The notes under the pieces were generated by a model, which did not search any database, had not been told where the DNA came from, and worked only from the letters and a program-made list of their open reading frames with translations. Both the position numbers and the translations under genes were made by a program. Shown in pieces: positions 2,693 to 63,333 of a stretch of 64,000 nucleotides of DNA (the first letter of the stretch is position 1; each line of letters opens with the position of its first letter). Origin of the DNA: Octopus sinensis (Eukaryota); the NCBI RefSeq assembly GCF_006345805.1, contig NC_043007.1, positions 61,504,001 through 61,568,000 of the forward strand, given 5' to 3'.

Positions 2693-3860
2693 GGCAGAAC
2701 AGTTGTAGTGCTATGGATAGTAGAAAAGTAATTGGGAACGCTGTTCGGATGCCATCACTGCTGTAATCTTTTCCCTTAAGACCTGCTTGACGAATACGTT
2801 TAAGAAGATATTTTTTCCTTCGAAGTCAAGGAAATGAATGATAGTCTACACTGGAATTATTTTGTCTAATACATATACACTGACAAGAAATTTGCATCAG
2901 GGGTACGTGCTAGTCATTGACTGAAAAACCTACTGGGACCTGGTTTTTTTACTAACGATGTCATCAGTCGTCAGTTGTAAAAGATAACGGCTGTCATCTG
3001 ACGTGTCTTTTCGTAGTATATGCCGTGACCTATTCCTCTGTCTCTCTGTCTAGCACTCTCAGGCATACAGTTTGGCCGAAATAGTTAAGAAGTTAGCTTC
3101 TTAAAGAGGAGATTTCGGGCTCGATCCCACTGTGTCGTCTTGGCCAAATGTTTCCTGTCAGAAACCCGTCAGATCCTTACCATGTGGCTTAAATTAGGAA
3201 ACTATATAGAGGCTTGTCGGGAGGATTGTATCTGCAATTCCAAAAGCTACATTCTTGTCATTTGCTCGTGCCATACTGATTCTGCCTGGGAATTACACTA
3301 AGGAGACATGTTTCTCGGGAATACCCAACCACTTAAAGGTTATTTCAGAAGCAGGTTGTTCACCTGATTGGTCAACTGAATCCTCATTATCGAACAATGA
3401 AGACACACCAAACGCACGCACGCAAAATGCACGCACGCACAGAGAAACGCCGTCACAACCAACGCAAACATACACAGATACACATACACATATATGCCCC
3501 CAACCCACATACATACACGCTCATACACCTACACACCTACACCAAGACTAGACATACGTACACATGTCCTACTGCATATAGCAAAATCAACGGTTAACCT
3601 GTACGGAAAGAACCACAGAGGTAGTTGCCACATAAACAATAATAACTGTGACTGCGTTTCAGTCCCCACTAAGAACCGGTTTTCCCAACGTTACACGTCT
3701 GTACCACTTTCCGGTTTGTAACAGCGAACACACTGAATTAAACAAAGAAAGTGATTGACATATTGACATTTAACCCTAGTAAAGATGTGGGAGATGTTGC
3801 GCATTAGAACTTAACAAGTGATCAGTAAAATCTGTTTGGAAAGCATCTTTTAGTTATTAC

Positions 3861-4007
3861 CTGTAATTTTCGGGAGAGGGCATATCGCTTCGGTGCACAC
3901 AACAGCTCCGGTGGACTTGCATGTACAATGATTGCATTTATCAATGGCTATGAACGTTTGGCCAATTACGTATACTTTTCCGTTGTAGTGGCATTCTATT
4001 TTAGTTA
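3861..4007 (-). CDS. Cys-rich repeat exon D13 (3'-most found)
   Basis: tttcttttcag|TA ... ACA G|gtaata; 147 nt. TKIECHYNGKVYVIGQTFIAIDKCNHCTCKSTGAVVCTEAICPLPKIT. Confidence 0.9.
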
Positions 4008-4204
4008 CTGAAAAGAAAAAAAATGTTGTGCACGAATTGAAGACGAAATTGAATATAACAACAAAAATATTGATCAGGTCGGCCTTATACACACACATAC
4101 ACAAATACGCAGAGACACGCACATATACAGATATGATGAGGAGAGCCTTCCATACACACACACACACATATATAGGAGTGGCTGTATGGTAAGAAGCTTG
4201 CTTT

Positions 4205-5498
4205 TCACATGGCAAAGAACAAAGATAAACTTATGGAAAGGGAAATAGCACCACCTAAAAAATGGTTAGAGGAATTTGGAAAGAAGACAGTGGTGTTGAG
4301 GACTTACTCCAAGTCCCTCGACACCATCGTCGTCTTCGAAAAACAAATGATTGAGGAGTTGGCAGAATATATGCCAACTATTAAGTTTATCTCTCGGGGG
4401 ATCAAATATGCAACGGTGTGGTTGCTGTTTGACTTCCCCGAAGAGGCTTGCGAATTCGTGACCCAGTCACTGGAGGGCAAGGAAATTTTGTTTCTTCTCA
4501 CTTGTGGGAAGAAGCTGACGAGGGCTTTGGGTCTGCGGTTTGCCACTCGGAATTGAGTCCGAGTGGATAGAGGATACTATCCGCCAGTGTCTGGGTGACA
4601 GCAGTACCAATCTCCCAAATGTGAACATTCTGCCTGCGGCTGATTGGGAGGGGTCAAAAGCTGTTTTGACCCTATGAACCCAATCAGCAGAAAATCTGGT
4701 TTTTCCAGATGATTTAAGAATGGCCGGGTCTAGGTATCCAGTGATGGTTGAGGGATGCCCCCACCCCAAGTGTCATCTGTGCCTGGAACCGGACCATATA
4801 AAAAAGAACTGCCCTAAGGACTAAAATAAGGTCCTGGAGCATTTGATAAAGATACCACTCTCTGCTCCCTCATTGGAGGGAGAGAAGGAGGATGTCGAGG
4901 ACCTCTTCGAAAAGAGGAAAAGAACGAAAGGTGGCCAACAATGGTTGCCCACCGAAAGATCCGAAGGCTGCGGGAGGGAGGGAGGATCTGCTGGACAAAG
5001 CGGAGGAACCCCACCCTCCCGTGGCTCAAAGGAAAAAAAGAAAAACAAAGAAAAAAAGAAAAACGGGACATTGCCGGCGGTTTGTGACACTCTGCTGGCG
5101 TGTCCCGAAGCACCTTCGGTGGGAGTTGTGCCACCAAAGGTGGACACTGTACATCCCCTTGGTGCCCCAGTTGCATTGTTTCATTGATTTATAATTAACT
5201 TGTATTAGCGGTTTATTGCCTCACAATGGCTTTTTGTGTTGTAAATGTAAGAGCTTTATTGTCTCCTTGATGTTTTACTTTGAAATATGTAAGAGGTTTT
5301 ATTTTGAACTATGTGAGAGGTTTGTTCCCTCAAATATGGTACTTATAAAGAACAATGTGCTCGGGTAAACAGCAATCGGCGGGTGTTGCTGTTGCCCTCA
5401 TTATTATTATATCGTCTATCATTTCATCTCATTATGTCCTTGTTCAGCCCGCACCTTCCTTTCTTTGTAAGGCCTTTCTGGCCAATTTAATAAATAAG
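4205..5498 (+). mobile_element. ORF1-only (HAL1-like) L1-derived retroelement with 13-bp TSD, inserted in a SINE
   Basis: AGAAGCTTGCTTT at 4192-4204 and 5499-5511; ATG at 4209; CCHC knuckle CHLCLEPDHIKKNC at 4771-4812; ends AATTTAATAAATAAG; no RT or EN sequence inside. Confidence 0.7.
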
Positions 5499-5644
5499 AG
5501 AAGCTTGCTTTCCAACCACTAGATTCCAGGTTCAGTCACACTGCATGGCATCTTGGGCAAGTGTCTTCTACTTTAGCCTCGGGTCGACCAAAAATTTGTG
5601 AATGGATTTTGTAGAAAGAAATTGAAAGTCCGTCGTATTTGAAT

Positions 5645-5706
<62 letters not shown>

Positions 5707-5802
5707 TTTAAAATAGGATAAAATCTTTATAAGAAAGTATCAAGTAGTTAGCGTGAAAAACCTCGTAAGAGAAAAATCTGTAAATTTTTTCAACTTTGAA
5801 AA

Positions 5803-6318
5803 TACTTATTTATATTATATAGAGGGTACTATTATTCATAGGTAACGCACGCTAGGAGGGACTTTTACAGTCAAAACTACTAAAATTCGGTACAATTTGT
5901 TTATTTTAGTAGTTTTGACTGTAAAAGTCCCTCCTAGCGTGCGGTACCTATGAATATTTTGTTCTGAGTAGGCAAGTTGTTACCGAAATACATTGCGAAA
6001 AAGCCCGCCATTTTCATAGATATGTAAAGATAAACATTCGTACATGCTGCGGCGAATTCTACGGTTGGTTGTCGGGTATGTGATGTTGTGTTTTTTCTTA
6101 CATGTCTTGAGTTCGTTGCACTGAAGAGCATAGAATGCATATTCTGCATTGATTGCGAAATCACAGGTGATATGTAACTAAATTTTGTTTTTAAATGACT
6201 CGCTTTGACGTTTTGCATTCGGTACAATTTGTTTATTTTAGTAGTTTTGACTGTAAAAGTCCCTCCTAGCGTGCGGTACCTATGAATAATAGTAGCCTCT
6301 ATATAATATAAATAAGTA
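5803..6318. mobile_element. MITE-like element with about 84-bp terminal inverted repeats and an internal duplicated arm
   Basis: 5803-5886 is the reverse complement of 6235-6318; 5885-5956 is directly repeated at 6217-6288. Confidence 0.7.
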
Positions 6319-6320
6319 CC

Positions 6321-6382
<62 letters not shown>

Positions 6383-6609
6383 TGTGTGTCTGTGTTTTTC
6401 CCACATCACCATTTGACAACCAGTGTCGGTGTGTTTATGTCTCCTTAACTTAGCGGTTCGGCAAAGAAACCGATAGAATATATACCACACTTAAAGCATA
6501 AGTACTGGGATCGATTCCTTCGACTAAAAATTCAAAGCAGTGCCCCAGCATGGCTGCAGTCTAATGACTGGGACAGGTAAAAAATGAAAGATAAAAGATA
6601 AATATATAT

Positions 6610-6820
6610 GGGAGAGGGTGCTGAAATGTTCCTGGCTTCAAGGGTATTTCGAAAGTCCTGGCTGGAGGCCACACCTTCCGAGCCCTTTTACACATAAAAA
6701 TTGAAGGTTAGTTGCATTAAGTGTGTTAATGTGAGAGTGGAATATGTTGAATAAAATTATAATTAACTGATTCTTTTACTTCTTTTAAGCCAGGAACTGT
6801 TCGGTCCCAGCTTCTTATAT
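6610..6820. mobile_element. mariner-type MITE
   Basis: Imperfect TIRs GAGGGTGCTGAAATGTTCCTGGCT / AGCCAGGAACTGTTCGGTCCC in a TA-rich context. Confidence 0.5.
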
Positions 6821-7039
6821 ATATACACATATAGTTAATATACCGTGATGCCTGGAGTGTGCATTTAGTAAGAAAAGACAGACTTCAAGCCTGTTTAAAA
6901 TTAGGCTTGGCTATGTGGTAAAGGATTTTACTTCTCAACCGCGTACTTTCTAATCCATTTCCACGGCACGCCGCTGTGGACAAGTGTTTTCTACTATATA
7001 GAATGACGTTTTAAGCTAAAACGAAAGAGTTCATGCAGA

Positions 7040-7420
7040 AAAATGTTGGCAACTGGAGGCGTTGCACAAAAATCTGCAGAGAAAGCATCCATTATTGGTC
7101 AATCATGAAGTAGTGTTGCTCTTACAGGACAATGCAAAGCCATATATTTTCCCAAGACATTCAGGAAAAGATTATGGACCTAAAAATGGAAGTTTTGCCT
7201 CATTCTCCTTATACTCCTGACTTTTCCCCATGTGACTGTCATCTTTTCAGATCATTAAAATATTGTTTAGAAGGTAAGCAGTTTATTAAGAAAAATGATA
7301 TTCAGTGTTTCTTTGCTTCGAAACCTGGAGAATTTTATGGCTGATAGTTTACCAACTTGCTAAATAGATTAGGTTTTCAATAATGAGGGGAAATGTATTT
7401 ACCTTGATTAAATACATTAA
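7040..7420 (+). mobile_element. mariner transposase C-terminal fragment
   Basis: LLQDNAKP...EVLPHSPYTPDFSPCDCHLFRSLK corresponds to the mariner HDNA and YSPDLAP.D motifs. Confidence 0.85.
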
Positions 7421-8031
7421 TATTAACCAAAAAAGCATTTGTTTCTTTCACTTTTTGAAATCCATTGGGTCTTTCTTTCTAATGTAATATAACATGATAT
7501 ATATATATATATATATATATCAGTATATCTCTTATATAAAATAGACCTCTGTGTGTGTATTCGCTTTTCACGCGAAAACAGCTGCACGAATTGCTTCCGT
7601 ACTTGTGATGCAGGAATAATTTGACCTCGGATACATAAGGTCTTCAATTTTATTTTTTGTATTTAAAATAAATAATATTGCCTTATATATATATGATTCT
7701 CTTTAAAAAGATTTCTCAATGTCAACTTCTGGTATTGACGTAGCAACGGCGAAATTTTCCGTTTTCATTTGTATACGTTTATTATGTGTATGTGTGAAAG
7801 AGAGAGAGAGAGACAGAGAGAGAGAGAGTAAGTAAAGAGGTGTGTTGTCACGTATACGTACATACATAAATACATATGCACACATCTTTTTGTATGTGTG
7901 CATATTTTTTTAACGTAACTCATTTATTCTTTTAATCCCCATTTAATCTCTCACACACATACATCCACTTCATCCAATGTTTGATATTGTATGTATGTAT
8001 GTATGTATGTATGTATGTATGTATGTATGTA

Positions 8032-8070
<39 letters not shown>

Positions 8071-8194
8071 GCATGCGTGTGGCGTTTCACAATCGCCATT
8101 TATGTCAATCGCTCTTGTGAATTTTTTTAACGTAACTCATTTATTCTTTTAATCCCCATTTTAATTTTCCAAGAACAATGTTCTCATTCTCTAC

Positions 8195-9200
8195 AAGAGG
8201 GAGACGTGGTAGTTATAGATGGTCAGTATTCTACAGTGAAGCGAAGACGAGTACAGGTAGCCAGAGTCAGTGTTGAATTCTGCAACTCTGTTAAGTATGT
8301 TTGCAAATATATAAACAAAACTTTAGATGCTGCAACATACACTCTTATGCAGAATGGCAGTCAGTAGATAGATAAAAATGACGAAGTTGCACAGTATGAC
8401 AGAGAAAGATACATCAGTACCAATGAGGCTTTTTGGAGCATCTTCAATTTTCCCATTCATGAGAAGCACCCAACCATCATTCATTTAAGTGTCCATCAAG
8501 AGAATGGCTACAGGGTTAACTTTACAAAACAAACAGCCTTACAACAAGCACTTTCTGCAAAAGAAACTACCCTTACTGCCTTTTTTAAGTCGTGTCAAGT
8601 AGATGAAGATGCAAGAAAACTCCTTCACCCAAAATTACCCAAGTATTGCACCTGGAGAAACAATAAATGGTACAAGAGGGAACGTGGGGCTGACGATCTT
8701 GCAAGAGTTTACAGTGTCCACTCAAGCCAAGCAGAATGCTACTACTTACGGCTCCTTTTGCATGAAGAACGTGGTCCACAATCACTCCAAGATACGAGGA
8801 AGGTAAATGGTCAGCAAAGTGTTTTAGAAAATGGTGAGCATCAGGGCCTTGCATTGACTGAAGAATCAATATCAGATTCTCAAAGGAAACTCAGTAACCT
8901 TTTTGCAGTTATACTGAACATGTATCAACTTAGCAGTCCCCTACAGCTTTGGATGAAACATTGAAACATCATGAGGACATGGCTGATGATTTAAAGTATG
9001 CAGTTCAACAGGCACACCTAGATATCAATATTCGTTCTCTGAAACAATTTTTAACCAAGCACTGATTGAAATTGAGCATCAAGTTTTGGCCATGGGAGGC
9101 AAAGATTTGCAAGTGTCTGGCTCTGGACTGCCAAAAACAAACGATCAAATTCGTGATTTAATTTCAAGAGACATAGTAAGCGAGACAAATTATGACATCA
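8195..9200 (+). mobile_element. Helitron RepHel fragment
   Basis: VKYVCKYINK; RYISTNEAFWSIFNFPIHEKHP; ETTLTAFF; LARVYSVHSSQAECYYLRLLLHEERGPQS; multiple frameshifts. Confidence 0.85.
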
Positions 9201-9558
9201 CATAGCTGGCAGCATTTGTATATACAGACACTTACCCATACTCTCACTCATACACGTATAGACGTCCATCTGCATATAGCAAAATCAACGGCCAGCCTGT
9301 ACGGAAAGTACCATACAAGTTGTTGCCACATAAACAATAATAACTGTGACTACGTCTCAGTCCCCACTAAGAACCGGTTTTCCCAACGTTACACGTCTGT
9401 ACCACTTTCCGGTTTGTAACAGCGAACACACTGAATTAAACAAAGAAAGTGATTGACATATTGACATTTAACCCTAGTAAAGATGTGGGAGATGTTGCGC
9501 ATTAGAACTTAACAAGTGATCAGTAAAATCTGTTTGGAAAGCATCTTTTAATTATTAC

Positions 9559-9702
9559 CTGTAATTTTTGTGATAGGGCATATCTCTTCGGTGCACACAA
9601 CATCTCCACTAGCCTTGCATGTGCACTGATTGCATCTATCTATCGCTTCGAACGTTTGGCCAATTATGTATATTTTTCCGTTGTAGTGACATGGCATTCT
9701 TA
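9559..9702 (-). CDS. Cys-rich repeat exon D12
   Basis: ttccttttcag|TA ... ACA G|gtaata; 144 nt. RMPCHYNGKIYIIGQTFEAIDRCNQCTCKASGDVVCTEEICPITKIT. Confidence 0.9.
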
Positions 9703-9864
9703 CTGAAAAGGAAAGAAAAATGTTGTGCACGAATTCAAGATGAAAATGAAGCTCTCTCACTCAAAGAACATAGGTACAAAGACTTTGATCAGCTTGACTT
9801 TACACATACAAAACTACAAAAATACTCATAGCCAAACACACATATATGTATGTGACGATGAGAG

Positions 9865-9908
<44 letters not shown>

Positions 9909-11800: not shown

Positions 11801-12738
11801 TTCTCTCATTTACATATAGAAATCCAAACATTCATGTTGAGATGCATGATACTAAAATACATATATGTAATTATATATAACCGTATGAGCATACATAGTT
11901 TGATACGTATTTACATATGTGCGTGTGTACGTGTGTGTATGTGTATGTGTTGTGTATGTGAGTGTATGAGTATGTACATATATGCACGTATGAGTACGTG
12001 TGTAGATATATGTATGTATTGTACATGTATATGTGTATAAAAAATAACTAAAAAATAAAAATAAAAAGAAGCAAATTTGAATTTTAACCGTTATCCGCGA
12101 AAATAATATCATATATATGTATAGATGGATAAGGGTATATGTGTGTGTACTTTAAGATTATGCGTATATCTGTGAGTGTGTGTAAGTGTCTATATGATTG
12201 TGTATACTTGTATATATGTATAAGTAAGGTTATATTTGCATATATGTATCTAAGACGTTGTATCCATTCACCGTTAGACGTTGGTGAGAGGGACAAAGTC
12301 ACACACACATCCAAAGATATATATATATATATATATATGTATGTCTATATATACATTATACATGTATATGTGTGTATAAAACTTTCAAGAAAGTAAGTCA
12401 TGTATACAACTTGAACAGACACATATCAGCACATAAACATACGTTCACATGTACATATGTACACACACACACAGACACGTCTACACGCCTAAATATTGAG
12501 AAACGTACATAAGTACATACATACATACAAACATGCATGCATACATGCGTATAGGCATGCACACATGCATGCGCATGTTCACATAAACATATGCACATAC
12601 ATATAAAGGCTACATGTATTATCTATTTAATAATAACATCGATGAAATGAAGGATAGTAGTAACATTACATTAGCTATGATCAAATTTAAATTTCAATAT
12701 TCAGTACATTGTGATTGTAGTACATATTTTGTAATTAC

Positions 12739-24313: not shown

Positions 24314-24552
24314 TAATAATTTAATAAAATCTATATTGCTAAATACTTAAAAAAAATCAACAACAAACAGACAAATAAACTGAAAAACAAAAAATGCGAA
24401 GCAGAACAATTTTACAATCTGTATGTTGGTGTTCTACTACTATGAGGGTACATTATTACTTCAGTATTATTATATTCTATATTGAACAAAAGTAGTCAAG
24501 ATTAACATTCAGTTCAGTCCATCGTTTTTCTAATATATCTTTTATGAATTAC

Positions 24553-24720
24553 CTTGTGTATTCATTGGAAGGCATTTTTTTTTGGTGCATACTGTATTGC
24601 CTTTACGCTGGCAAGTGCATTGATTACATCTATCTACAGATTTGAACGACTGTCCAAATAAATATATATGTCCGTAGTAGTGGCATACCGCGAAAATGTC
24701 GATCTTGTGTGTGGTAGTTT
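24553..24720 (-). CDS. Cys-rich repeat exon D10
   Basis: ttttatttcag|AA ... CAA G|gtaatt; 168 nt. TTTHKIDIFAVCHYYGHIYLFGQSFKSVDRCNQCTCQRKGNTVCTKKKCLPMNTQ. Confidence 0.9.
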
Positions 24721-25621: not shown

Positions 25622-25768
25622 CTTGACTTCCTGAGGAAAGGCATATTCTTTTCGTACATTCTACAATTCCTTTGGGTTTGCAACTGCATTTATTGCAGTT
25701 ATCAGCAGCTGGGAACGTCTCTCCAACGATATATATTTTAATTCCGTACTTGCATTTTACTGATATCT
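25622..25768 (-). CDS. Cys-rich repeat exon D9
   Basis: ctttctccttag|AG ... CAA G|gtaata; 147 nt. ISVKCKYGIKIYIVGETFPAADNCNKCSCKPKGIVECTKRICLSSGSQ. Confidence 0.9.
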
Positions 25769-26502: not shown

Positions 26503-26655
26503 CTTCATTTCCTTCAGATACACATATCTTTTTGGAACACAGTACGCTCCCTTTAGGTTTACAGCTGCACTGATTACATTTATCATTAGCTACAAAGGTC
26601 TCTCCAATGACATACATTTTCCATTATATAGATTGGTTCTGTCACTCAAAATCGC
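26503..26655 (-). pseudogene. Decayed pseudo-exon of the same Cys-repeat family
   Basis: The 3' part reads MYVIGETFVANDKCNQCSCKPKGSVLCSKKICVSEGNE, but Cys1 is absent and the YNGK segment is shifted by -1 nt (in-frame TGA and TAA). The donor-homologous site is G|ATGATACTAAAAG, versus G|GTAATACTAAAA in D2 and D4. Confidence 0.75.
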
Positions 26656-26953: not shown

Positions 26954-27100
26954 CATGAGTTTCTGAGAAAACGCATATCTTTGTGGTACAGTCAACATTT
27001 CCTTTTGCCTTGCAAGTGCATTTATTGCATTTGTCAGCAGCATTAAACGTAACTCCAATGGTATATGTTTTGCCATTGTAGTGGCATTTTACTGAAATTT
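26954..27100 (-). CDS. Cys-rich repeat exon D8 (not in ORF track)
   Basis: cttttctttcag|AA ... CAT G|gtaaca; 147 nt. ISVKCHYNGKTYTIGVTFNAADKCNKCTCKAKGNVDCTTKICVFSETH. Confidence 0.88.
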
Positions 27101-31937: not shown

Positions 31938-31985
<48 letters not shown>

Positions 31986-31986
<1 letters not shown>

Positions 31987-32536
31987 GAGTGAGAGAGCAG
32001 TGCATGTCATCAAAGTAACACTGGTGCAAAATATACGAAGCCCAGTATACCCATCATGACTACCCGTCTGATAAGGGTACACTAGGCACATGCATCACAA
32101 CCATATGTGCGTGACATGGTGATCTCATATCAAGATAAACAGCACATGACCTTGTAGGTGGGGCCCAGTTAGAATTTTCTTCTGGTCGAGTTACCCATCC
32201 CTTTCAAAAGGTCCCTGAATAAGGGTTGTTTAAGGATGTTGAACGAACCACCCATGTTTCCAGAGGTGAATTATTCAAACCCCAAAGAATCCCTCTCAAC
32301 ACATGGCTATGATGCTCCCCCACTACTTCTGCTCGTGACCAGAGATGCACATATCGTCAGCCACTAAGGGACATGATCAGCTGGTTAAGGTCAAACAACT
32401 GAGAAGCAAATCTGTGGTATTGAGCAGAATATTTGCTGCAGCCCATCTTTTATACCAAGACAAAGCTACATGATAACACTTCCAATCAGTTAAGATCAGA
32501 ATCCATGAGAGCCACTGCCTGGTACTGCATCAGGGC

Positions 32537-32545
<9 letters not shown>
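31986..32545 (-). repeat. About 560-bp (AAT)n-associated dispersed repeat, inverted copy
   Basis: Reverse complement of 59125-59690. Confidence 0.8.
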
Positions 32546-32574
<29 letters not shown>

Positions 32575-32579
32575 TATTA

Positions 32580-32640
<61 letters not shown>

Positions 32641-32707
32641 CATTACCATTATCATTATCATCATCATTATTATTATTATTATTATTATTAATATACATAC
32701 ATACATG

Positions 32708-35976: not shown

Positions 35977-36298
35977 CTGCTGCTCTCGCAAAAAAGGAAA
36001 TAAAATAAATGTTTTAAACAAATTAAATAAAACTTTGAATACAGCACCCTCTCCCCAGAAGATAATAGACAAGAGATTAACTGGTTGAGTAGTTTGTGAC
36101 ACAGACAAGAGGGATGAAATAGAAGAGTAACAAGAGATGATGAGAGTAAAAGAGGAGAGTGAGAAACAAGAAATAAGCCCGACAATTAAGAATTAAAAGT
36201 ACTGTAAACCTTCATTTAGACGTAAACGATATATTTTATATAAAACAATGAACATAGCATTCAGTGTCAGATATTCCATAAATATCTTTTAGTATTAC

Positions 36299-37230: not shown

Positions 37231-38349
37231 CTGAAAGTAAAGTTTTACAGGAATTGAGTTTTAATTTCAATATGCCACATTGCCTCAAGTATAAGCTTTT
37301 AGTCAGTTCATATGAAATGCAATATCTTAAGTATAGTTGTATCCGAAATATGGATGAAAGGTAGACATGAAACGTCAATTGTTTATGTTTTCTGGCCCTA
37401 AATGCAGCTATTGGAAGAGGCAACACTAAAATGGTAAATAAATTTAAATATAGAGAGAATGCAAGGAAATACAGTTTATTTTGAATCTGTTCAACAAATA
37501 ATACCGTAAAGCTGAGATAGTTGAGGTACTATAACAGTAATGGTGTTAAGCTCATAAGAGCTCCACTCCGCCTCCGATGTGAATACTACTTGCAATAGAT
37601 TGACATAACTACCTCTCGTCCATTTAACACCTTGGAACTGGAGGGTCGGTTCGGTTTTATGAGTTTCTGGTTACTTCAAGAGGTATTTATCTTACTTATT
37701 GATAAGACTGGAAGTTGTGTGTCACACTCTACAGGCAAAAGGCATAATCTATCAAGTTAATACATTGTTTTATGTGTATAATACTTCACAAACACCACAC
37801 AAATAATTTTATACGGCAAGCACTAATGGAATTCTAAGGTCTAACTTCCACAACACAGCGTAGTTATTATGTTAGAAACTGACTAGGTTCACACAATGAG
37901 GCACCGAGAAAATTGGAATTTTTAAATTATTAAATTATAAAAGAAATCATTAAAAAACGATGTATTAAATTTATGGTTGACCTTCGTTTTTTTTTCTTTA
38001 TTTAGTTTTAAAAACATTTCACTTCCGCTAATAATACTCTTTATCAAATCCTATTATTCTTCATAGTAGTATATCTGACTTGTTATAATATTCAGCATAT
38101 AAAACAAGACCATGGTCACCTTATTAAGGAAATTTATATTAGAAAAGATTCTGGAAACAAATGTAATGCAGAAAAATTTTCCAAACGAAATTAGGGAAAT
38201 GATTTCTATCTATGTATTTTTTTTTATTCCATGCAGGTTTGAAAATAAATTCTCACTTTGATAAGAACAATAAGATTTTTTTTATAAAACGGTGATCACA
38301 TTTATCATAGCTCAGTGCATCCTATTTCTCAAACATTTTTTAGTATTAC

Positions 38350-38511
38350 CTTTAGTTGTTGTGGCAGGGCATATAGTTTTGGTGCATACTATGTTTCCGT
38401 TGGCCTTGCAACCGCACTGATTACATTTATCTACAGCTGTGAACGTTTGTCCAAATATATATATTTGTCCATTGTAGCGGCATACTGAGGAAGTTTTCTT
38501 CTGTCTTGATT
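38350..38511 (-). CDS. Cys-rich repeat exon D2
   Basis: ttctttcag|AA ... AAA G|gtaata; 162 nt. SRQKKTSSVCRYNGQIYIFGQTFTAVDKCNQCGCKANGNIVCTKTICPATTTK. Confidence 0.9.
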
Positions 38512-38835: not shown

Positions 38836-39009
38836 TTTCAGCATTGCATTTTTTCTTTGTGCAAATGATTTCTTTAGAAAGCATACAGTAACACGTGTCG
38901 CAGCCGTTGATAGACATGAATTTGACACCAATTTTATAAACAACATTATTGTAGGTGCACGACTCAGACAAGTATATCTTCTTTGTAGTGGATAAAGAAC
39001 GTTTCATTG
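38836..39009 (-). CDS. Cys-rich repeat exon D1 (5'-most, divergent pacifastin-like/half-VWC module)
   Basis: Acceptor tttattatag|CA ATG, donor GAA A|gtaagt; 174 nt, phase 1-1. Peptide MKRSLSTTKKIYLSESCTYNNVVYKIGVKFMSINGCDTCYCMLSKEIICTKKKCNAE has 6 Cys with the family spacing. Confidence 0.8.
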
Positions 39010-39907
39010 CTATAATAAATGACAAAAATACCAACCCCCCAAAAAACAATGTAAGACAGTAACGATTATGTTAGATGATTAATTATTTTTACAGTTGATG
39101 AAACAATGTGCTTGGATATTTATCTTTTAATTAAATATCACCGTTTACTTATCTATAATTATATAGAATTCCATATGACTTTCTACTTGATTAAATATCT
39201 GCGATATGTTATTTTTAATACGATTAGAAGTTTTGGAAATATTTAAATCATCGTTACAGTTGAAAAATACCCTAATATTTACATCGACGCTGCGTTTCGA
39301 CTTGTTTGATCGTCGATAGCTATTAGGTGTCTCATTCCTGAATGTTAAATATTAGCTGGCTGGATCTGGCTCCTGTATTTCTAAATCAAGTGAACTAACG
39401 TTATTATCCACGTGGTCACTGATGCATAATAATTTTTCATTTAAATATATTTTAAGTAAAAGACTCCACATTGATATCTTATTAGTGATGGCTTCACTGC
39501 TTGTATTTTCAACGAGTTAATTGGCGTTTTTGATTTCGCTAAGTGGTTGTCTATAAATTATGGATATATACTCCATAACGAATATGATTTCCTTTATCAT
39601 ATCATATAGTTTCAGTCATTCTCGACTTAGATCTCTCTGTTCTTTGAAAGACTTCGATATTTTTTCCTGAAACTTTAGTGTTTCTCATTATTTTAATGAG
39701 ATTTTCTGTAAATGCAAGGGAGTTATCAGTTTGTTCATGTTTGAGTTATACCTGATTAGGCTTAATTACGATGAATTTGCAACACTCTTCCATTATTTCA
39801 GAAGAGTTTAAAATTATGTCGTGTGAGGAACGAGGATGGTTTGTAGCTAGATTCATGATATCATATATGACTGACGTGTAACAACAACAACAACGATAAT
39901 AATAATA

Positions 39908-40565: not shown

Positions 40566-43500
40566 GTCTAGGGAAGATAATAAAGAAGTTCTTGCGGCCT
40601 TCTACCTTGCCATATATTTCCCCACAGATAAATCTAACACTGTACAAACATACTTAAACTGGAGACAGAAACACCCTGAAGTAAGACCCTACACAGACAG
40701 TAACAAACTTGCCAACGTCAGAAGAAACTTTATAAAAAAAAAATTACTGACTGAAGTAGAGATTGATTAAGTTAGACAAGCAGTAACGGATAAAATGAAC
40801 GTAGCTGCAGCTAGAGAAGATAATACAGAGTAAATAATTATAGACCAGCCCAGGGCTGATAAAAACGAAGTAAAGATTGAAAGAGTTAGTATAAGTAGTA
40901 GGCAAAGTGAAATATTCCCTGAACCAATCATAAACACTAAGACAGATGAACATCAAATAGATAAAGATAGTCACACAAATATTGACCCAACAGAACTACA
41001 TGAGCTAAAAAATCAAATCATGATTGAATGGCTGAAAATTAAAGAAACCAGCATGGATGAACGGGATACACTCCCTAAAATCCGCAACTCTAACCAAAAC
41101 ATGAAAATAATTGGTAAAATCCGGCTTGCACTAAAGGATATAATTTCAGCTAATGATGTTGATATCACAGATCTCAACCACCTATACTATGCATCCGCGA
41201 AAATCTCAACGATCCTATGTGGTGTAAAGATTAGAAAACGGCAACATTCCCACAAAAAGCCTCCTTGGCAAGAGCGTTTGCAACAACAAATTAAACTATT
41301 TAGATCTGACATTGAATATTTGAAAAACCTTAAGGTTCACAAGACTACCAAACCTACAAAAACCCAAAAATTAATGTAAAAATATAATATGAAAACTATA
41401 CTTGATATTGATGCCACCATAGAAACCATCAAACAAAAGGTATCTGCTAAAGCTGCCCGCATAGCGAGGTATGAAAAGCGTGTTAGATTTTTCAAGGACA
41501 ACAACATGTTCAAAAATAACCCCAAAAGTTTTTACAGGAAGATAGGAAAAACAGCAGTTACAGTAAGGTCTGTACCATCAAAAAAAGTGCAGGGATTTTG
41601 GAATAAAATTTGGGCAGAAGAAAAAACACACAACGAAAAGGTCCCCTGGATTGATAGAATATCTACAGAACTGGACTCCTTAGAAGAGCAAAAGTGAGAG
41701 GGTGTCACGGTAGAATATATAAGATCTACTCTCAGGAGGTCAAGCAAATGGAAGTCTCAAGGAAAGGATAAAATTCCTAACTTCTGGCTGAATGCCTTCC
41801 CAGAGAGCCATGAACTGCTAACAGAACTTTACAATGATGTTTTGCAACGCCCTAGTAGGATGCCTCTTTGGCTAGTTAATGGGTTAACATTTCTGCTTCC
41901 AAAAAGTGAAGAAACAAATGAACCGAAAAACTATAGACCCATAACCTGCTTAACAACTATGTATAAAACGATAACATCTGTCCTGACGGAATATACTTAT
42001 AGTTTTTTTAACAGACAGCAGCATATTCCCTAATGAACAGAAAGGATGTAAACGTGGATCATACGGTTGTAAAGATCAACTACTTATCAATAAGATGATC
42101 TTAGAAGACTGTCACAAACAACACAAAAACTTATCAATAGCCTGGATAGACTATAAAAAGGCTTTTGATAGCCTACCACATAGCTGGATTAAGAAATGCC
42201 TGGAAATGTATAAGATAGCTCCTACTCTGCGAAACTTTTTGACTGTAAGTATGAGATCATGGAGAACCATACTAACTTTGAACAGTGACAATGAATCTCT
42301 AAACGCTGGAGATGTAAAAATTTCATGTGGCATTTTCCAGGGTGACTCACTATCACCACTTCTCTTTTGTTTAGCCTTAATACCTCTCTCAAAACTGCTC
42401 AATGACGCGTAGTACGGGTATAAAATGTTTGATAAAAGAATTAGACCCAGCGGAGAGCTACAAGCACCTAGGGGTAATTGATGGGGACAGAATAAGGCAT
42501 TCGAAGATGAAGGGAAGGATCAGGAGAGAATGTTATCGAAGAGTGAGAGCAATACTCAAGACAGCTGAATGCAAGAAACAGGATCGAAGCGATCAATGCT
42601 TTAGCCATACCAGTCGTGACTTACAGTTTCAATATCGTTAACTGATCAATTACTGAAATATGTCAGCTTGACAGAAAAATACGAAAACTGTTGACAATGC
42701 ATAGAATGCACCACCCTAAGGCAGATACAGAACTACTTTATCTGCCAAGAAAAGACGGGGGCCGTGGTCTTTTACAACTGGCAATAACAATGAAGATTGC
42801 TACAATTGGCCTAGACACCTACCTGAAAAAGTCTGAGAACTGGATGTTAAAACTTGTCTCAAAACATGAAAACAAGAAAGCATCATACTCAGTAACAAAA
42901 CAGGCAAAGGAATATCTAAGTGAATTCCGAGTACAACAATTTTCGGAATTAGAGATAGACATACAAGAAACAAGCACAGAAAAAGCTAAGCGCATGAAAA
43001 CCCGTGCTAAAACTGCTGTCTTAGATATTCTGAATGATAAATGGCAAGAAAAACCTCTCAATGGCAAATACCCAAAGAGAGCGAATAATGCAGATATTGA
43101 CAAAGCCCTGACCCATCAATAGCTAATGACCTCTGGCTTAAAATCTGAAACAGAGGGTTTATCATAGCAGCTCAAGACCAATACCTACCAACAAGAAACT
43201 ACCAGGCCAACATATTAAAGAACGGCAGTAGCCCAACATGTCGTGTATGTCGACAACAAAATGAAACCATTGATCATGTTGTCTTCAAGTGCAGTCTTCT
43301 AGCGCCTACAGAGTACCTCAACAGGTATGATAGAGCTGCACAATATATTCACTGGGTAATTGGCAAACACCTGGATTTGCCCCATGAAAAAAACTGGTGG
43401 GAACACAAACCACCTCCAGTGCTTGAAAATTACCACATCTCACTCCTCTGGAACTTTACCATTCAAACTGACAGAAAGATAGATGCAAATAGGCCAGACA

Positions 43501-43990
43501 TCATATTGAAAGACTTCAGACAAAGAACATGCCTCCTCATTGATATGACTGTCCCAATCGATATAAACGTATCTGTCAAGACCTACCAAAAACTGAGCAA
43601 ATATAAAGATCTTGAAATAGAAATCAGCAAAATGTGGAACCGGAAAACTAAAACAATACCTGTTGTCATAGGTGCCCTGGGAATGATAGCGAAAGGGGCT
43701 GATTACTACCTAACTCAGATACCAGGAAACCCCAAAATGGCAGAAATTCACAAGATAGTGCTCATGGGAACTGCTCATATCCTACGCAAAATACTCTCTA
43801 TGTAATCTCAATGTTTAAAACAAACAATTTAAAAAAAAATTTATTTATTAGACATTCACTAGTACAACACCAAAAACCCCCAAATATATGGCACACTGGG
43901 CATAACAACAACGTGAACTTCCAACTTGTTGTCTCTTGTTGTCTTGGAGCCAACTTGTACAAACATAAAGCAAAAGTCAAACATAGAATA
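40565..43990 (+). mobile_element. R4/Dong-like LINE, near full length (about 3.4 kb), with stops and frameshifts
   Basis: [50 protein letters not shown]; (AAT)n at both ends. Confidence 0.9.
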
Positions 43991-44004
43991 ATAATAATAA
44001 TAAT

Positions 44005-44545
44005 AAATGCCCTTATGCAGTACGACGTAGTGGCTCTCATGGTTTCTGATCTTAACTGATTGGTAGTGTTATCATGTACATTGTTTTGTCTTGGTATAAA
44101 AGACGAGCTACAGCAAATATTCTACTCAATACCACAGATTTGCTTGTCAGTTGTTTAACCAGTTGAGCATGTCCATTAGTGGTTGATGATATATGCATCT
44201 TTGATCATGAGCAGAAGTGGTTGGGTAGCATCATAGGTATGTGTTGAGAGGAATTCTTCGGAGTTTGGATAATCACCTCTGGAAACATGGGTGTTTTGTT
44301 CATCCTAAAAAAAACCTTACTCAGGGACCTTTTGAGCGGGATGGGCTGCTCAGCCTAAACAAAAAATTCTAACTGAACCCGCACCTGCATGTCCTGTTTG
44401 TCTTGATATAAGATCACCATGTCATGCAGATATGGTTGTGATGCACGTGCCTAGTGTACCTTTATCGGACGGGTAGTCATGATGGGTATATTGGGCTTCG
44501 TATATTTGCACTCCAGTGCCACTTTGATGGCATGCATTGCTGCCA
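44005..44545 (+). repeat. About 560-bp (AAT)n-associated dispersed repeat
   Basis: Collinear with 59125-59690. Confidence 0.8.
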
Positions 44546-44569
44546 CTCAACAACAACAGCAACAACAAC

Positions 44570-44620
<51 letters not shown>

Positions 44621-57044: not shown

Positions 57045-57450
57045 AATGCTTTGATGCAGCAGCAGGTACTGGCTCTCATGACTTCTGATCTTAACTGATT
57101 GGAAGTGTTATCATGAACGAGCAGAAGTAGTGGGGGAACATCATAGTCATGTGTTGAGAGGAATTCTTTGGGGTTTGAATGATCAACCCCTGAAAACATG
57201 GGTGTTTTGTTCTACATCCTCATTCAGGGACCTTTTGAGTAGGATGGGCTACTCAACCTGAAGAAAATTCTAACTGGGTTCCACCTTCAAGGTCATGCAC
57301 TGTTTATCTTGATATGTCGCGCACATATGGTTGTGATGCATGTCCCTGGTGTAGCCCTAACAGCCGGGTAGTCACGATGGGTATATTGGGCTTCATATAT
57401 TCGTACCCCAGTGTCACTTTGATGGCATGCACTGCTTTCTCTCTTTCACT
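57045..57450 (+). repeat. (AAT)n-associated dispersed repeat (deleted copy)
   Basis: Collinear with 59125-59690 with internal deletions; joined directly to the LINE at 57465. Confidence 0.7.
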
Positions 57451-57464
57451 CACTCACTCACTCG

Positions 57465-58855
57465 CGAAAAACAGGATCGAAGCGATCAATGCTTTAGTCA
57501 TACCAGTCGTGACTTACAGTTTCAATATCGTTAACTGGTCAATTATTGAAATATGTAATCTTGACAGAAAAATACGAAAACTGCTGACAATGCATAGAAT
57601 GCACCACCCTAAGGCAGATATAGAACTACTTTATCTGCCAAGAAAAGAGGGAGGCCGAGGACTTTTACAACTGGTAATAACAATGAAGATTGCTACAATT
57701 GGCCTAGACACCTACATGAAAAAGTCTGAGGACTGGATGTTAAAACTTGTCTCAAAACATGAAAACAAGAAAGCATCATACTCAGTAACAAAACAGGCAA
57801 AGGAATATCTAAGTGAATTCCGAGTACAACAAATTTCGGAATTAGACATACAAGAAACAAGCACAGAAAAAGCTAAGCGCAGGAAGACCCGCATGTCTTA
57901 GATATTCTGAATGATAATGGCAAGAAAAACCTCTCAATGGCAAATACCCAAAGAGAGCGAATAATGCAGATATTGACAAAGCCCTGACCCATCAATGGCT
58001 AATGACCTCTGGCTTAAAATCTGAAATAGAGGGGTTTATCATAGCAGCTCAAGATCAATGCCTACCAACAAGAAACTACCAGGCCAACATATTAAAGAAC
58101 GGCAGTAGCCCAACATGTGTATGTCAACAACAAAAAGAAACCATTGATCAAGTGCAGTCTTCTAGCGCCTACAGAGTATCTCAACAGGCATGATAGAGCT
58201 GCACAATATATTCACTGGGTAATTTGCAAAAGCCTGGACTTGCCCCATGATAAAAACTGGTGGGAACACAAACCACTTCCAGTGCTTGAAAATGACCACA
58301 TCTCACTCCTCTGGAACTTCACCATTCAAACTGACGGAAAGATAGATGCGAATAGGCCAGACATCATAGTAAAAGACTTCAGACAAAAAACATGCCTCCT
58401 CATTGATATGACTGTCCCAATCGATATAAACGTATCTGCCAAGACCTACCAGAAACTGAGCAAATATAAAGATCTTGAAATAGAAATCAGCAAAATGTGG
58501 AACCTGAAGACTAAAACAATACCTGTTGCCATAGGTGCCCTGGGAATGATAGCGAAATAGGCTGATTACTACCTAACTCAGATACCAGGAAACCCCAAAA
58601 TGGCAGAAATTCACAAGATAGTGCTTACGGGAACTGCTCATATCCTACGCAAAATACTTTCTATGTAATCTCAAGTTTTAAACAAACATAATTTTCGTAT
58701 GTTTTTTTAGGCATTCACTAGTACAACACTAAGTACAAAACCAAATATATGACACCCTAGGCATAACACCAACACGAACTTCCAACTTGTTGTCTCTTGA
58801 GGTCTCTGGGTGAGACTTGGAGCCGGCATGTGCAAATGTAAAGCAAAAGTCAAAC

Positions 58856-58860
<5 letters not shown>
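57465..58860 (+). mobile_element. R4/Dong-like LINE 3' fragment, same subfamily as 42580-43990
   Basis: Near-identical peptides (MHRMHHPKADIELLYLPRK; ANRPDII). Confidence 0.88.
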
Positions 58861-58923
<63 letters not shown>

Positions 58924-59092
58924 CCATGATCCCACACTCATAGATAAGTGAATGTTTTGGCATATTCAGTATAGCAGGCAACATAGCTAGGGTAGTTAGG
59001 AAGGTTCATGGTATCTAAGGTAATAATAATAATAATAATAATAATAAAAATAATAACAACAACAACAACAACAACAACACAACAACAACAAC

Positions 59093-59124
<32 letters not shown>

Positions 59125-59129
<5 letters not shown>

Positions 59130-59683
59130 GCCCTGATGCAGTACCAGGCAGTGGCTCTCATGGCTTCTGATCTTAACTGATTGGAAGTGTTATCATGTAC
59201 ATTGTTTTGTCTTGGTATAAAAGATGGGCTACAGCAAATATTCTGCTCAATACCACAGATTTGCTTGTCAGTTGTTTGACCTTAACCAGTTGAGCATGTC
59301 CCTTAGTGGCTGACGATATGTGCATCTCTGATCACGAGCAGAAGTAGTGGGGGAGCATCATAGCCATGTGTTGAGAGGGATTGTCTGGGGTTTGAATAGT
59401 TCACCTCTGGAAACATGGGTGGTTCTTTCAACATCCTTAAACAACCCTTATTCAGGGACCGTTTGAGCGGGATGGGCTACTCAACCTGAAGAAAATTCTA
59501 ACTGGGCCCCACCTGCAAGGTCATGTGCTGTTTATCTTGATATGAGATCACCATGTCGCGCACATATGGTTGTGATGCATGTGCCTGGTGTACCTTTATC
59601 AGACGGGTAGTCATGATGGGTATATTGGGCTTCGTATATTTTACCCCAGTGTCACTTTGATGGCATGAACTGCTCTCTCACTC

Positions 59684-59723
<40 letters not shown>

Positions 59724-60120
59724 GTAATAACAACAATAACAACAACAGGCAGTGGCTCTCATGGCTTTTCTTCTTAACTAATTGGAAGTGCTATCATGTA
59801 CATTGTTTTGTCTTAGTGTAAAATATGCACTACAGCAAATATTCTGCTCAGTACCACGGATTTGCTTGTCAGTTGTTTGACCATGACCAGTTGAACATGT
59901 CCCTTGGTGGCTGACAATATGTAGATGTCTGATCACGATCAGGAGTAGCGGGGAGCAGCATAGCCATGTGTCAAGAGGAATTCTTTGGGGTTTGAATGAT
60001 TCACATCTGGAAACATGGGTGTTTTGATCATCCTCCTTAAACAAAGCTTATTTAGCGACCTTTTGAGCGGGATGGGCTACTCAGCCAGAAGAAAATTCTA
60101 ACTGGACTCCACCTTCAAGG
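59125..60120 (+). repeat. Two tandem copies of the (AAT)n-associated repeat (59125-59690 full, 59745-60120 partial)
   Basis: Both begin ...GGCAGTGGCTCTCATGGCT...; separated by (AAT)n. Confidence 0.8.
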
Positions 60121-62349: not shown

Positions 62350-62751
62350 AAATCTGCTCAATACCACAAATTTGCTTTCAGTTGAGCATGTCCCTTAGTG
62401 GCTGACGATATGTGCATCTCTAATCACGAGCAGAAGTAGTGGGGAGCATCACAGCCATGTGTTGAGAGGAATTCTTTGGGATTTGGATAATTCACCTCTG
62501 GAAACATGGGTGTTCCATTCAACATCATCAAACAGTCCTTATTCAGGGATCTTTTGATTGTTGATGGGCTACTCGACCTGAAGAAAATTCTAACTGGAAG
62601 GTCATGCGATATGAGATCACCATATCGTGCACACATGGTTGTGGTGCATGTGCCTGGTGTACCCTTATCAGACGAATAGTCATGATGGATATACTGGGTT
62701 TCATATATTTTACCCCAGTCACTTTGATGACATACGCTGCCCTCTCATACA

Positions 62752-62760
<9 letters not shown>
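62350..62760 (+). repeat. (AAT)n-associated dispersed repeat (partial)
   Basis: Collinear with 59235-59690; ends ACACTG(AAT)n. Confidence 0.75.
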
Positions 62761-62821
<61 letters not shown>

Positions 62822-63333
62822 TTGATGATGATGATAATGACGACGACGACGATGATTTCTTTTATTTGCCACCAAGGCAAATAAAATACGTCAACCATTC
62901 CCGGTTGGCATATTTTTCTGTAATATCTGATTTGCACTTCCTTCCTTCACCCTAACTTTCTATATTTTTCCTGATTGCTAACTAAATATAAACACTTCAT
63001 CCAAATATAAAATTTGTTTAGTTAAATTTCTGATAGAAGAGTTTCTAATAGGAATTTTCCTACATGCCTATCTCGCATGTAAAATTATATAATTCCTGTA
63101 TTCAAATGTAACATGTGTAATGGTGGATAAATAATACCAACAAATTTTCCAACTTCCTGTTTTGTCGTACAATAAAACTGTCAACAATATTTCTAGAATT
63201 TTCAACGTTAGTATGCAACTTGCATCTATACAACGAGAGCAGCTACATATGAGATTGTAATAATGGAATAAACAGATGTGCTCCAAGAAGGCACAAGTGA
63301 GATTTTACCCTACCTACCCAATACATATGTATG

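Follow-up and report, generated by a model that had tools for sequence, protein, structure and literature searches.

An intron segment of 194 nt is identical between two neighboring exon units of an octopus repeat gene, while the exons themselves are no more diverged than the introns around them. The gene lies in a 64,000-nucleotide stretch of Octopus sinensis DNA (contig NC_043007.1 of assembly GCF_006345805.1, positions 61,504,001 to 61,568,000), which we call the window; all coordinates below are positions within this 64-kb window, and the gene is read on the minus strand. Its exons each encode one short cysteine-rich module resembling VWC and pacifastin domains, and the two units concerned carry exons D12 and D13. 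Positions 3659-3852, downstream of D13, are letter-for-letter equal to positions 9357-9550, downstream of D12, at a fixed offset of 5698. The exon sits at background divergence and the 194-nt block is the outlier, an abnormally identical piece of intron. The block probably marks a short tract of intragenic gene conversion, 194-212 nt long, that arose recently and stops no more than 10 nt from the splice donor. A preliminary description made from the sequence had reported about 192 nt of identity at this offset, beginning at 3661, and two mismatches in a further ~35 nt. Both observations hold: the identity extends to 194 nt, and the 35 nt beyond the block (3624-3658) contain two mismatches, at 3654 and 3658.

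The identity of the block stands out against all homologous sequence around it. The block is bounded by mismatches at 3658 and 3853 and contains none at its 194 positions, compared with 32 at the remaining 235 ungapped homologous positions (Fisher p = 1.6e-9). When the 32 mismatches were placed at random, none of 200,000 permutations yielded an identical run of 194 nt or more. The 95% upper bound on block divergence is 1.5%. Identical runs in the D12/D13 pair drop from 194 nt to 30 and 22 nt, and the longest runs in other repeat pairs of the window with ~90% identity measure 30-101 nt. As the divergence of the exon is similar to that of the distal intron and falls within the 11-30% range of the upstream intron (Table 1), the exon is not fast-evolving and the block represents the anomaly.

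The homologous unit shared by D12 and D13 is short and the block lies inside it with sharp edges. Homology extends over ~3566-4053 versus 9264-9750 at 90.6% identity with a weak continuation to ~4150, so that the unit spans only ~490-585 nt (3566-~4150 versus 9264-~9868). The remainder of the 5.7 kb D12-D13 spacing, ~5 kb, is unrelated sequence, and past ~585 nt the two introns lack any similarity. At the distal limit of homology a CA-rich microsatellite begins in the D13 copy and unrelated sequence in the D12 copy. On either side, the block passes without an indel into flanking sequence that is homologous and colinear between the copies. An identity between paralogues significantly above that of their homologous flanks, the hallmark of ectopic gene conversion used in GENECONV-type analyses, is found for this block. 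On the donor side, positions 3853-3870 contain a single mismatch, at 3853 (intron position +8), and the end of the tract falls between 3853 and 3871, at most 10 nt from the donor.

Table 1. Segments of the D12/D13 homologous unit and associated features (window positions; strand in parentheses).
Feature	Position	Partner or second copy	Mismatches	Divergence	Remarks
Distal intron	3566-3658 (-)	9264-9356	12/93	13%	
Identical block	3659-3852 (-)	9357-9550	0/194	0%	
Exon, ungapped part	3861-3994 (-)		19/134	14%	
Upstream intron adjoining exon	4016-4052 (-)		4/37	11%	
Upstream intron, farther out	~4058-4128 (-)			25-30%	Indels present
Homologous upstream intron, 3' splice-site side	4008-4150 (-)	~9703-9868			
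Block copy 1	3659-3852 (-)				Intron nt +9 to +202, sense-downstream of exon D13
Block copy 2	9357-9550 (-)				Intron nt +9 to +202 downstream of exon D12 (D12-to-D13 intron)
Probable continuation of tract over 5' splice site into last 10 exon nt	3853-3870 (-)	9551-9568			
Imperfect hairpin	3687-3770 (-)	9385-9468 (identical copy)			84 nt, 31 bp, -27.9 kcal/mol, sense strand
Exon D13	3861-4007 (-)				147 nt, phase 1-1, one six-cysteine VWC/pacifastin-like module VTKIECHYNGKVYVIGQTFIAIDKCNHCTCKSTGAVVCTEAICPLPKIT
D13 splice sites (minus-strand reading)	acceptor AG 4009-4008, donor GT 3860-3859				
Exon D12	9559-9702 (-)				144 nt, phase 1-1, paralogous module VRMPCHYNGKIYIIGQTFEAIDRCNQCTCKASGDVVCTEEICPITKIT

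There is no evidence of diversifying selection on the D12 and D13 exons. Counted over the 44 codons (132 nt) that begin with the first Cys and close the exon, the two exon cores differ at 19 nt and at 11 of 44 residues, in agreement with the counts first reported. The accompanying statement that these changes fall mostly at amino-acid-changing sites is correct as a count (12 non-synonymous and 7 synonymous differences) but does not amount to an excess: non-synonymous sites are about fourfold more numerous (104.5 : 27.5), which explains the count, and the non-synonymous share is below that predicted by the site ratio. The Nei-Gojobori method applied to the 44 codons gives a non-synonymous divergence (dN) of 0.125 and a synonymous divergence (dS) of 0.311, corresponding to a dN/dS of 0.40, and the ratio is 0.31 for the C1-C5 core. 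All module pairs in the window show dN/dS < 1 with a median of 0.23, D12 and D13 being the closest pair of the array; with 44 codons only, the D12/D13 ratio is not significantly < 1 either (p = 0.12). The dN/dS > 1 between duplicated exons typical of positively selected toxin and defense genes is thus not observed (0.40), nor are the introns overall less diverged than the exon, as divergence outside the island is 11-30% versus 14% for the exon.

The preliminary description had favored diversifying selection, with an exon evolving faster than its intron. In such a scenario, a recent duplication would have been followed by positive selection that parted the exons and left the intron unchanged, the pattern of toxin genes. 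The modules do resemble pacifastin-type protease inhibitors (Pfam 2e-71, 12 modules), pacifastin-like proteins have been reported from octopus posterior salivary glands (PMC7693380) and the inhibitor-like P1 residue varies between module subfamilies. Nothing here places the D12/D13 gene among those salivary proteins or assigns it a venom role. We consider positive selection very unlikely. A dN/dS of 0.40 (0.31 in the core) speaks against it, and selection on the protein cannot account for non-coding sequence to either side of the island having diverged as much as the exon. The duplication is moreover not recent, as Octopus bimaculoides has a separate orthologue for D12 and for D13. A dN/dS below 1 together with a conversion breakpoint at the donor had been named at the outset as the outcome that would speak against selection, and this combination is what the comparison yields. 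Conotoxin and snake PLA2 venom genes are known for accelerated exon evolution and conserved introns. The octopus pair resembles them superficially in having an intron stretch more alike than the adjoining exon and a cysteine-rich secreted-type module. It differs in that dN/dS is below 1 and the conserved part is confined to the 194-nt island, the remaining intron being diverged like the exon. An intron more alike than its neighboring exon can consequently mimic positive selection on a toxin-like module, and a local homogenizing event carries no information on adaptive protein evolution.

Protein comparisons indicate that the D12/D13 duplication is older than the split from O. bimaculoides. Each of the two paralogues has its own orthologue in this outgroup, as assigned at the protein level only, and dS between D12 and D13 amounts to 0.31-0.39; together these place the duplication before the species split. 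D13 and O. bimaculoides module 16 agree at 35 of 38 core residues. D12 and module 15 occupy the same position, have a linker one residue shorter than that of D13 and have 'YIIG' and 'CTEEIC' in common. The O. bimaculoides array goes on with about ten 'VTKIEC...CTEKIC' modules, which fall beyond the window because its sequence stops within the intron that follows D13. Given an old duplication and a block divergence of at most 1.5%, the identity of the block is much younger than the units and secondary. The C-terminal ends of the two modules point in the same direction. The tail reads 'KIT' in D12 and D13 alike, but KTT or KTS in their two orthologues and throughout the rest of the O. bimaculoides subfamily. 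The Ile codon of 'KIT' lies within the identical stretch 3854-3870, which is parted from the block by the mismatch at 3853 only. This common tail hints at concerted evolution, since one substitution spread by conversion would be more parsimonious than two parallel changes.

Gene conversion, and not constraint, is the mechanism that we infer to be the probable cause of the identity island. The D12 and D13 units would have arisen as adjacent single-exon modules duplicated before the O. bimaculoides split, after which exon and flanking intron would have drifted alike to ~13-14%, with the protein under mild purifying selection. Much later, a break in one intron would have been repaired using the paralogous intron 5.7 kb away as template, and this non-allelic conversion would have overwritten ~194-212 nt of one unit with sequence from the other. 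The tract would extend from about intron position +202 up to the donor, or ~10 nt across it, leaving the rest of the exon unchanged. Published conversion tracts range from a dozen to several thousand nt (PMC3409193), and a tract of 194-212 nt fits conversion as it falls within this range. According to a rough estimate, a random tract of such size in the homologous unit would spare the exon ~25% of the time. The position of the tract thus leaves room for selection against homogenizing the two modules without requiring it. The preliminary description had listed an intron-confined conversion tract among its alternatives, and this has become the best-supported explanation.

Several points weigh against conversion as the sole explanation. 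The DNA comparison is based on one genome with orthology assigned from proteins only, and the 'KIT' argument relies on automatically annotated protein sequences. Outside the tract the copies are only ~87% alike, which is low for efficient ectopic recombination. In addition, the block holds a stable, strand-specific hairpin and the D13 counterpart in O. bimaculoides is an optionally skipped exon, so selective constraint could contribute to the identity of the block.

An assembly or polishing effect, in which reads of one copy served to correct its paralogue, is an improbable source of the identity. Although perfect identity is the expected product of over-polishing near-identical paralogous stretches, polishing would be unable to turn 13% divergence into identity because the reads would map uniquely. 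It could only sharpen an already existing high similarity, and the anomaly would remain. The window is also free of Ns, and both copies are embedded in colinear, copy-specific flanks.

The block does not behave like a mobile element. Among the outcomes named as possible refutations was the separate insertion of a young, multicopy transposable element behind each of the two exons, and the window is indeed rich in interspersed repeats; apart from this, only the identity itself favors a transposon. No third copy of the block and no inverted partner is present in the 64 kb on either strand, as searched with 7-nt words, and the block edges carry neither indels nor target-site duplications. Moreover, the ~45 nt of the block nearest the donor are homologous to the starts of other module introns, which identifies them as old intron and not as an insert. 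Insertion of a transposon is accordingly an extremely improbable origin of the block. A 27-mer of the block had no match among JGI metagenome and IMG/VR contigs, and exact look-ups of two open reading frames overlapping the block returned no match.

Transposon-like sequences are present elsewhere in the window and beside the homologous unit. The D12-D13 intron contains broken reading frames at 8206-9180 (+), including '...VKYVCKYINK...' and '...ALIEIEHQVLAMGGKDLQVSGSGLPKTNDQ...', which we take to resemble a remnant of a rolling-circle (Helitron-type) transposase, a resemblance unconfirmed by Pfam (only Phage_GPA, E = 0.02). This segment was considered as a transposon-derived coding remnant forming the boundary of homology and was set aside as Pfam gave no significant match. 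At the O. bimaculoides locus, a weak PIF1-helicase match is located just past the 3' end. Upstream of the module array, a direct repeat of 1.4 kb with 91% identity (42576-44006 versus 57469-58880) is found ~14.9 kb apart, as well as an interspersed family of 300-700-nt repeats in both orientations (31940-32651, 43987-44610, 59016-59739, 62379-62838 and 57117-57441). The 1.4-kb repeat and the interspersed family probably represent transposable elements.

A function of the block at the RNA or DNA level, such as regulating the cassette-type inclusion of modules or forming the precursor hairpin of a structured or small RNA, with purifying selection preserving both copies since the duplication, is an unlikely explanation. 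The imperfect hairpin within the block (Table 1) is more stable than expected on the sense strand (z = -3.9) and less so on the other strand (z = -1.3). In O. bimaculoides isoforms, the counterpart of D13 and the next module are each optionally skipped. The first ~45 intron nt are recognizably conserved across most modules (GTAATAnTAAAAGAT...ACTGA), making some donor-proximal constraint probable. However, zero changes in 194 nt, while neutral sites changed by 13-31%, would demand constraint on every base, which is implausible, and the hairpin covers only 84 of the 194 nt. The best windows of neighboring, unrelated module introns form comparable hairpins with z = -2 to -3.6, and no homologue of the block beyond +45 exists behind any of the ten other modules. 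The conserved functional element suggested in the preliminary description is thus only weakly supported. Alternatively, both processes could act together: the block would be an intronic RNA element around the 84-nt hairpin, situated just downstream of the donors that compete in D13-type skipping, with conversion homogenizing the copies and selection maintaining them. Both donors would then need the same regulatory context and identity would be kept. We regard this combination as improbable. If true, a functional element tied to module skipping would offer a handle on exon choice in cephalopod tandem-repeat genes.

Known RNA classes and long-range pairing were examined for the block. Rfam searches at gathering thresholds and at E up to 10 detected no family in the block, with two chance-level matches (E = 1.1 and 4.4) located outside, and ARAGORN detected no tRNA. 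A tRNA- or short interspersed element-like sequence or another known RNA in the block was rejected on these null results. A microRNA precursor was likewise rejected: the hairpin is stable, yet other introns contain comparable ones, and its arm sequences are absent from the supplements of an octopus microRNA survey (PMC9699675). Between the block and either exon no significant complementarity was observed, duplexes being no better than shuffled controls, and folding of the 501-nt unit showed no excess over shuffles (z = +1.1). These fold and duplex controls speak against exon-intron pairing of the kind found in RNA-editing complementary sequences or splicing selectors.

Module introns share a donor-proximal motif and annotated isoforms differ by whole modules. 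The motif GTAATAnTAAAAGAT...(T/C)ACTGA occupies intron positions ~+8 to ~+46 in ~8 of 12 modules, whose exons are 30-60% diverged; sites on the minus strand include 3816-3860, 12694-12738, 24508-24552, 36254-36298 and 38305-38349. Based on this conservation the motif may act as an intronic splicing signal. Several modules have an in-frame stop after the donor (GGT AAT AAC TAA), and some O. bimaculoides products end in '...GNN', as though reading through the donor to the stop. Twenty annotated O. bimaculoides products of the gene vary in the set of whole modules that they contain. Each of the counterparts of D13 (3861-4007), of the next module and of 24553-24720 and 38350-38511 is present in some products only, and the D12 counterpart is constitutive in the annotated products. 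This distribution suggests cassette-type skipping of individual repeat exons.

The octopus pair represents a known process, gene conversion, in a gene not studied before. In the primate L/M opsin genes, introns are homogenized by conversion and exons stay distinct (PMC3213168). Both systems consist of tandem copies in which the exons of the paralogues are more diverged than the introns, the duplication is older than intron similarity suggests and the statistically detected conversion tracts are intronic, mostly so in the opsins. In contrast to the opsins, the octopus case concerns two exon modules of one gene and not two genes, involves a single ~200-nt tract instead of conversions accumulated over kilobases and is known from the DNA of one genome. 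Arthropod Dscam likewise has duplicated, alternatively spliced exons in tandem, controlled by elements in the introns. Similar to Dscam, the octopus gene contains tandem symmetric exons of similar sequence, isoforms differing by whole modules and a motif near the donor that is conserved across modules. Unlike in Dscam, most octopus modules are constitutive and their inclusion is not mutually exclusive. No Dscam-type docking-site/selector complementarity was found by word search of the window, folding of the 501-nt unit or exon-block duplex analysis. If the block is a conversion tract, the module units of this octopus VWC/pacifastin-like repeat gene still exchange sequence, and as converted stretches distort both the dating of modules and dN/dS scans, such exchange matters for either kind of analysis on this repeat family.

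The window encodes part of a large modular protein. At least 13 short segments of the window, D12 and D13 among them, resemble one another and form a family. The window has a G+C content of 31-44% (2-kb windows), dense microsatellites and interspersed repeats. The module exons are single, AG/GT-bounded exons of 144-171 nt on the minus strand, all of phase 1-1 and each encoding one six-cysteine module with the consensus C-x-Y-N-G-x-x-Y-x-x-G-Q-T-F-x-x-x-D-K-C-N-x-C-x-C-x3-G-x3-C-T-x3-C. D12 has one codon less than D13 ahead of the first Cys. The closest protein is the O. bimaculoides 'kielin/chordin-like protein' XP_052827939.1 (1459 aa, gene range ~132 kb, 82% identity), and the window encodes the counterpart of its residues 380-1019. 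By tblastn, D13 corresponds to residues 970-1019 of this protein at 88%. A further upstream exon at 38837-39010 (-) matches residues 380-437 at 91% and encodes a divergent module with 'NGCDMCYC'. In the remaining stretch, 39011-64000, a threshold of E = 1e-3 yielded no exon for residues before 380.

The module is best described, on the basis of profile and model comparisons, as the N-terminal six-cysteine subdomain of a VWC repeat that is also a pacifastin-like core. Against Pfam, twelve joined modules match Pacifastin_I at 2e-71 (12 stretches) and VWC at 3e-51, and the D13 module alone matches Pacifastin_I at 1.9e-8 and VWC at 1.6e-6. For VWC (PF00093), a single module scores 28.8 bits versus a cut-off of 27.6 and the twelve modules jointly 172 bits. 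An AlphaFold model of the D13 module (predicted local distance difference test, pLDDT, 85) adopts a small all-beta fold. Its best PDB matches in Foldseek are VWC domains of NEL, CCN3 and collagen IIA with query-normalized template modeling scores (TM-scores) of 0.67-0.69, followed by TIL'/E' modules of mucin/VWF, fibronectin type I modules and locust pacifastin inhibitors (~30 residues). Sequence-level PDB matches are marginal (E = 0.004-0.1). The module thus combines a PF00093 profile score above the cut-off with a VWC-like fold. Full VWC domains contain ten cysteines including a C-terminal CC-x-x-C subdomain. The octopus module lacks this C-terminal half and the ten-cysteine arrangement, having six cysteines only and matching profile positions 1-39 of 57, but possesses the motif C-N-x-C-x-C-x3-G-x3-C-T-x3-C. 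The pacifastin pattern is C-x(9-12)-C-N-x-C-x-C-x(2-3)-G-x(3-6)-C-T-x3-C. The Pacifastin profile (PF05375) is matched at 34.4 bits versus a cut-off of 27.9; the C2-C6 part fits the pattern exactly, and the C1-C2 spacing of 18 residues is longer than in the pattern.

Sequence differences at the inhibitor-like site separate module subfamilies. The P1-equivalent position (C-T-X-x-x-C; for example 3880-3897 and 9578-9595) is Lys in 8 of 12 modules. It is Glu in D12, D13 and all O. bimaculoides 'VTKIEC' modules, and the recently expanded Glu subfamily may have a different specificity or no inhibitory activity. A protein-guided scan of metagenome contigs yielded a single distant relative of the module, with 38% identity, encoded at positions 1491-1601 of contig LSQX01003088.1 (JGI). 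Between the exons 26954-27100 and 25622-25768, the window contains a thirteenth, degenerate module copy at 26516-26620 (-). With in-frame stops, a lost first cysteine and no GT donor, this copy looks like a dead pseudo-exon.

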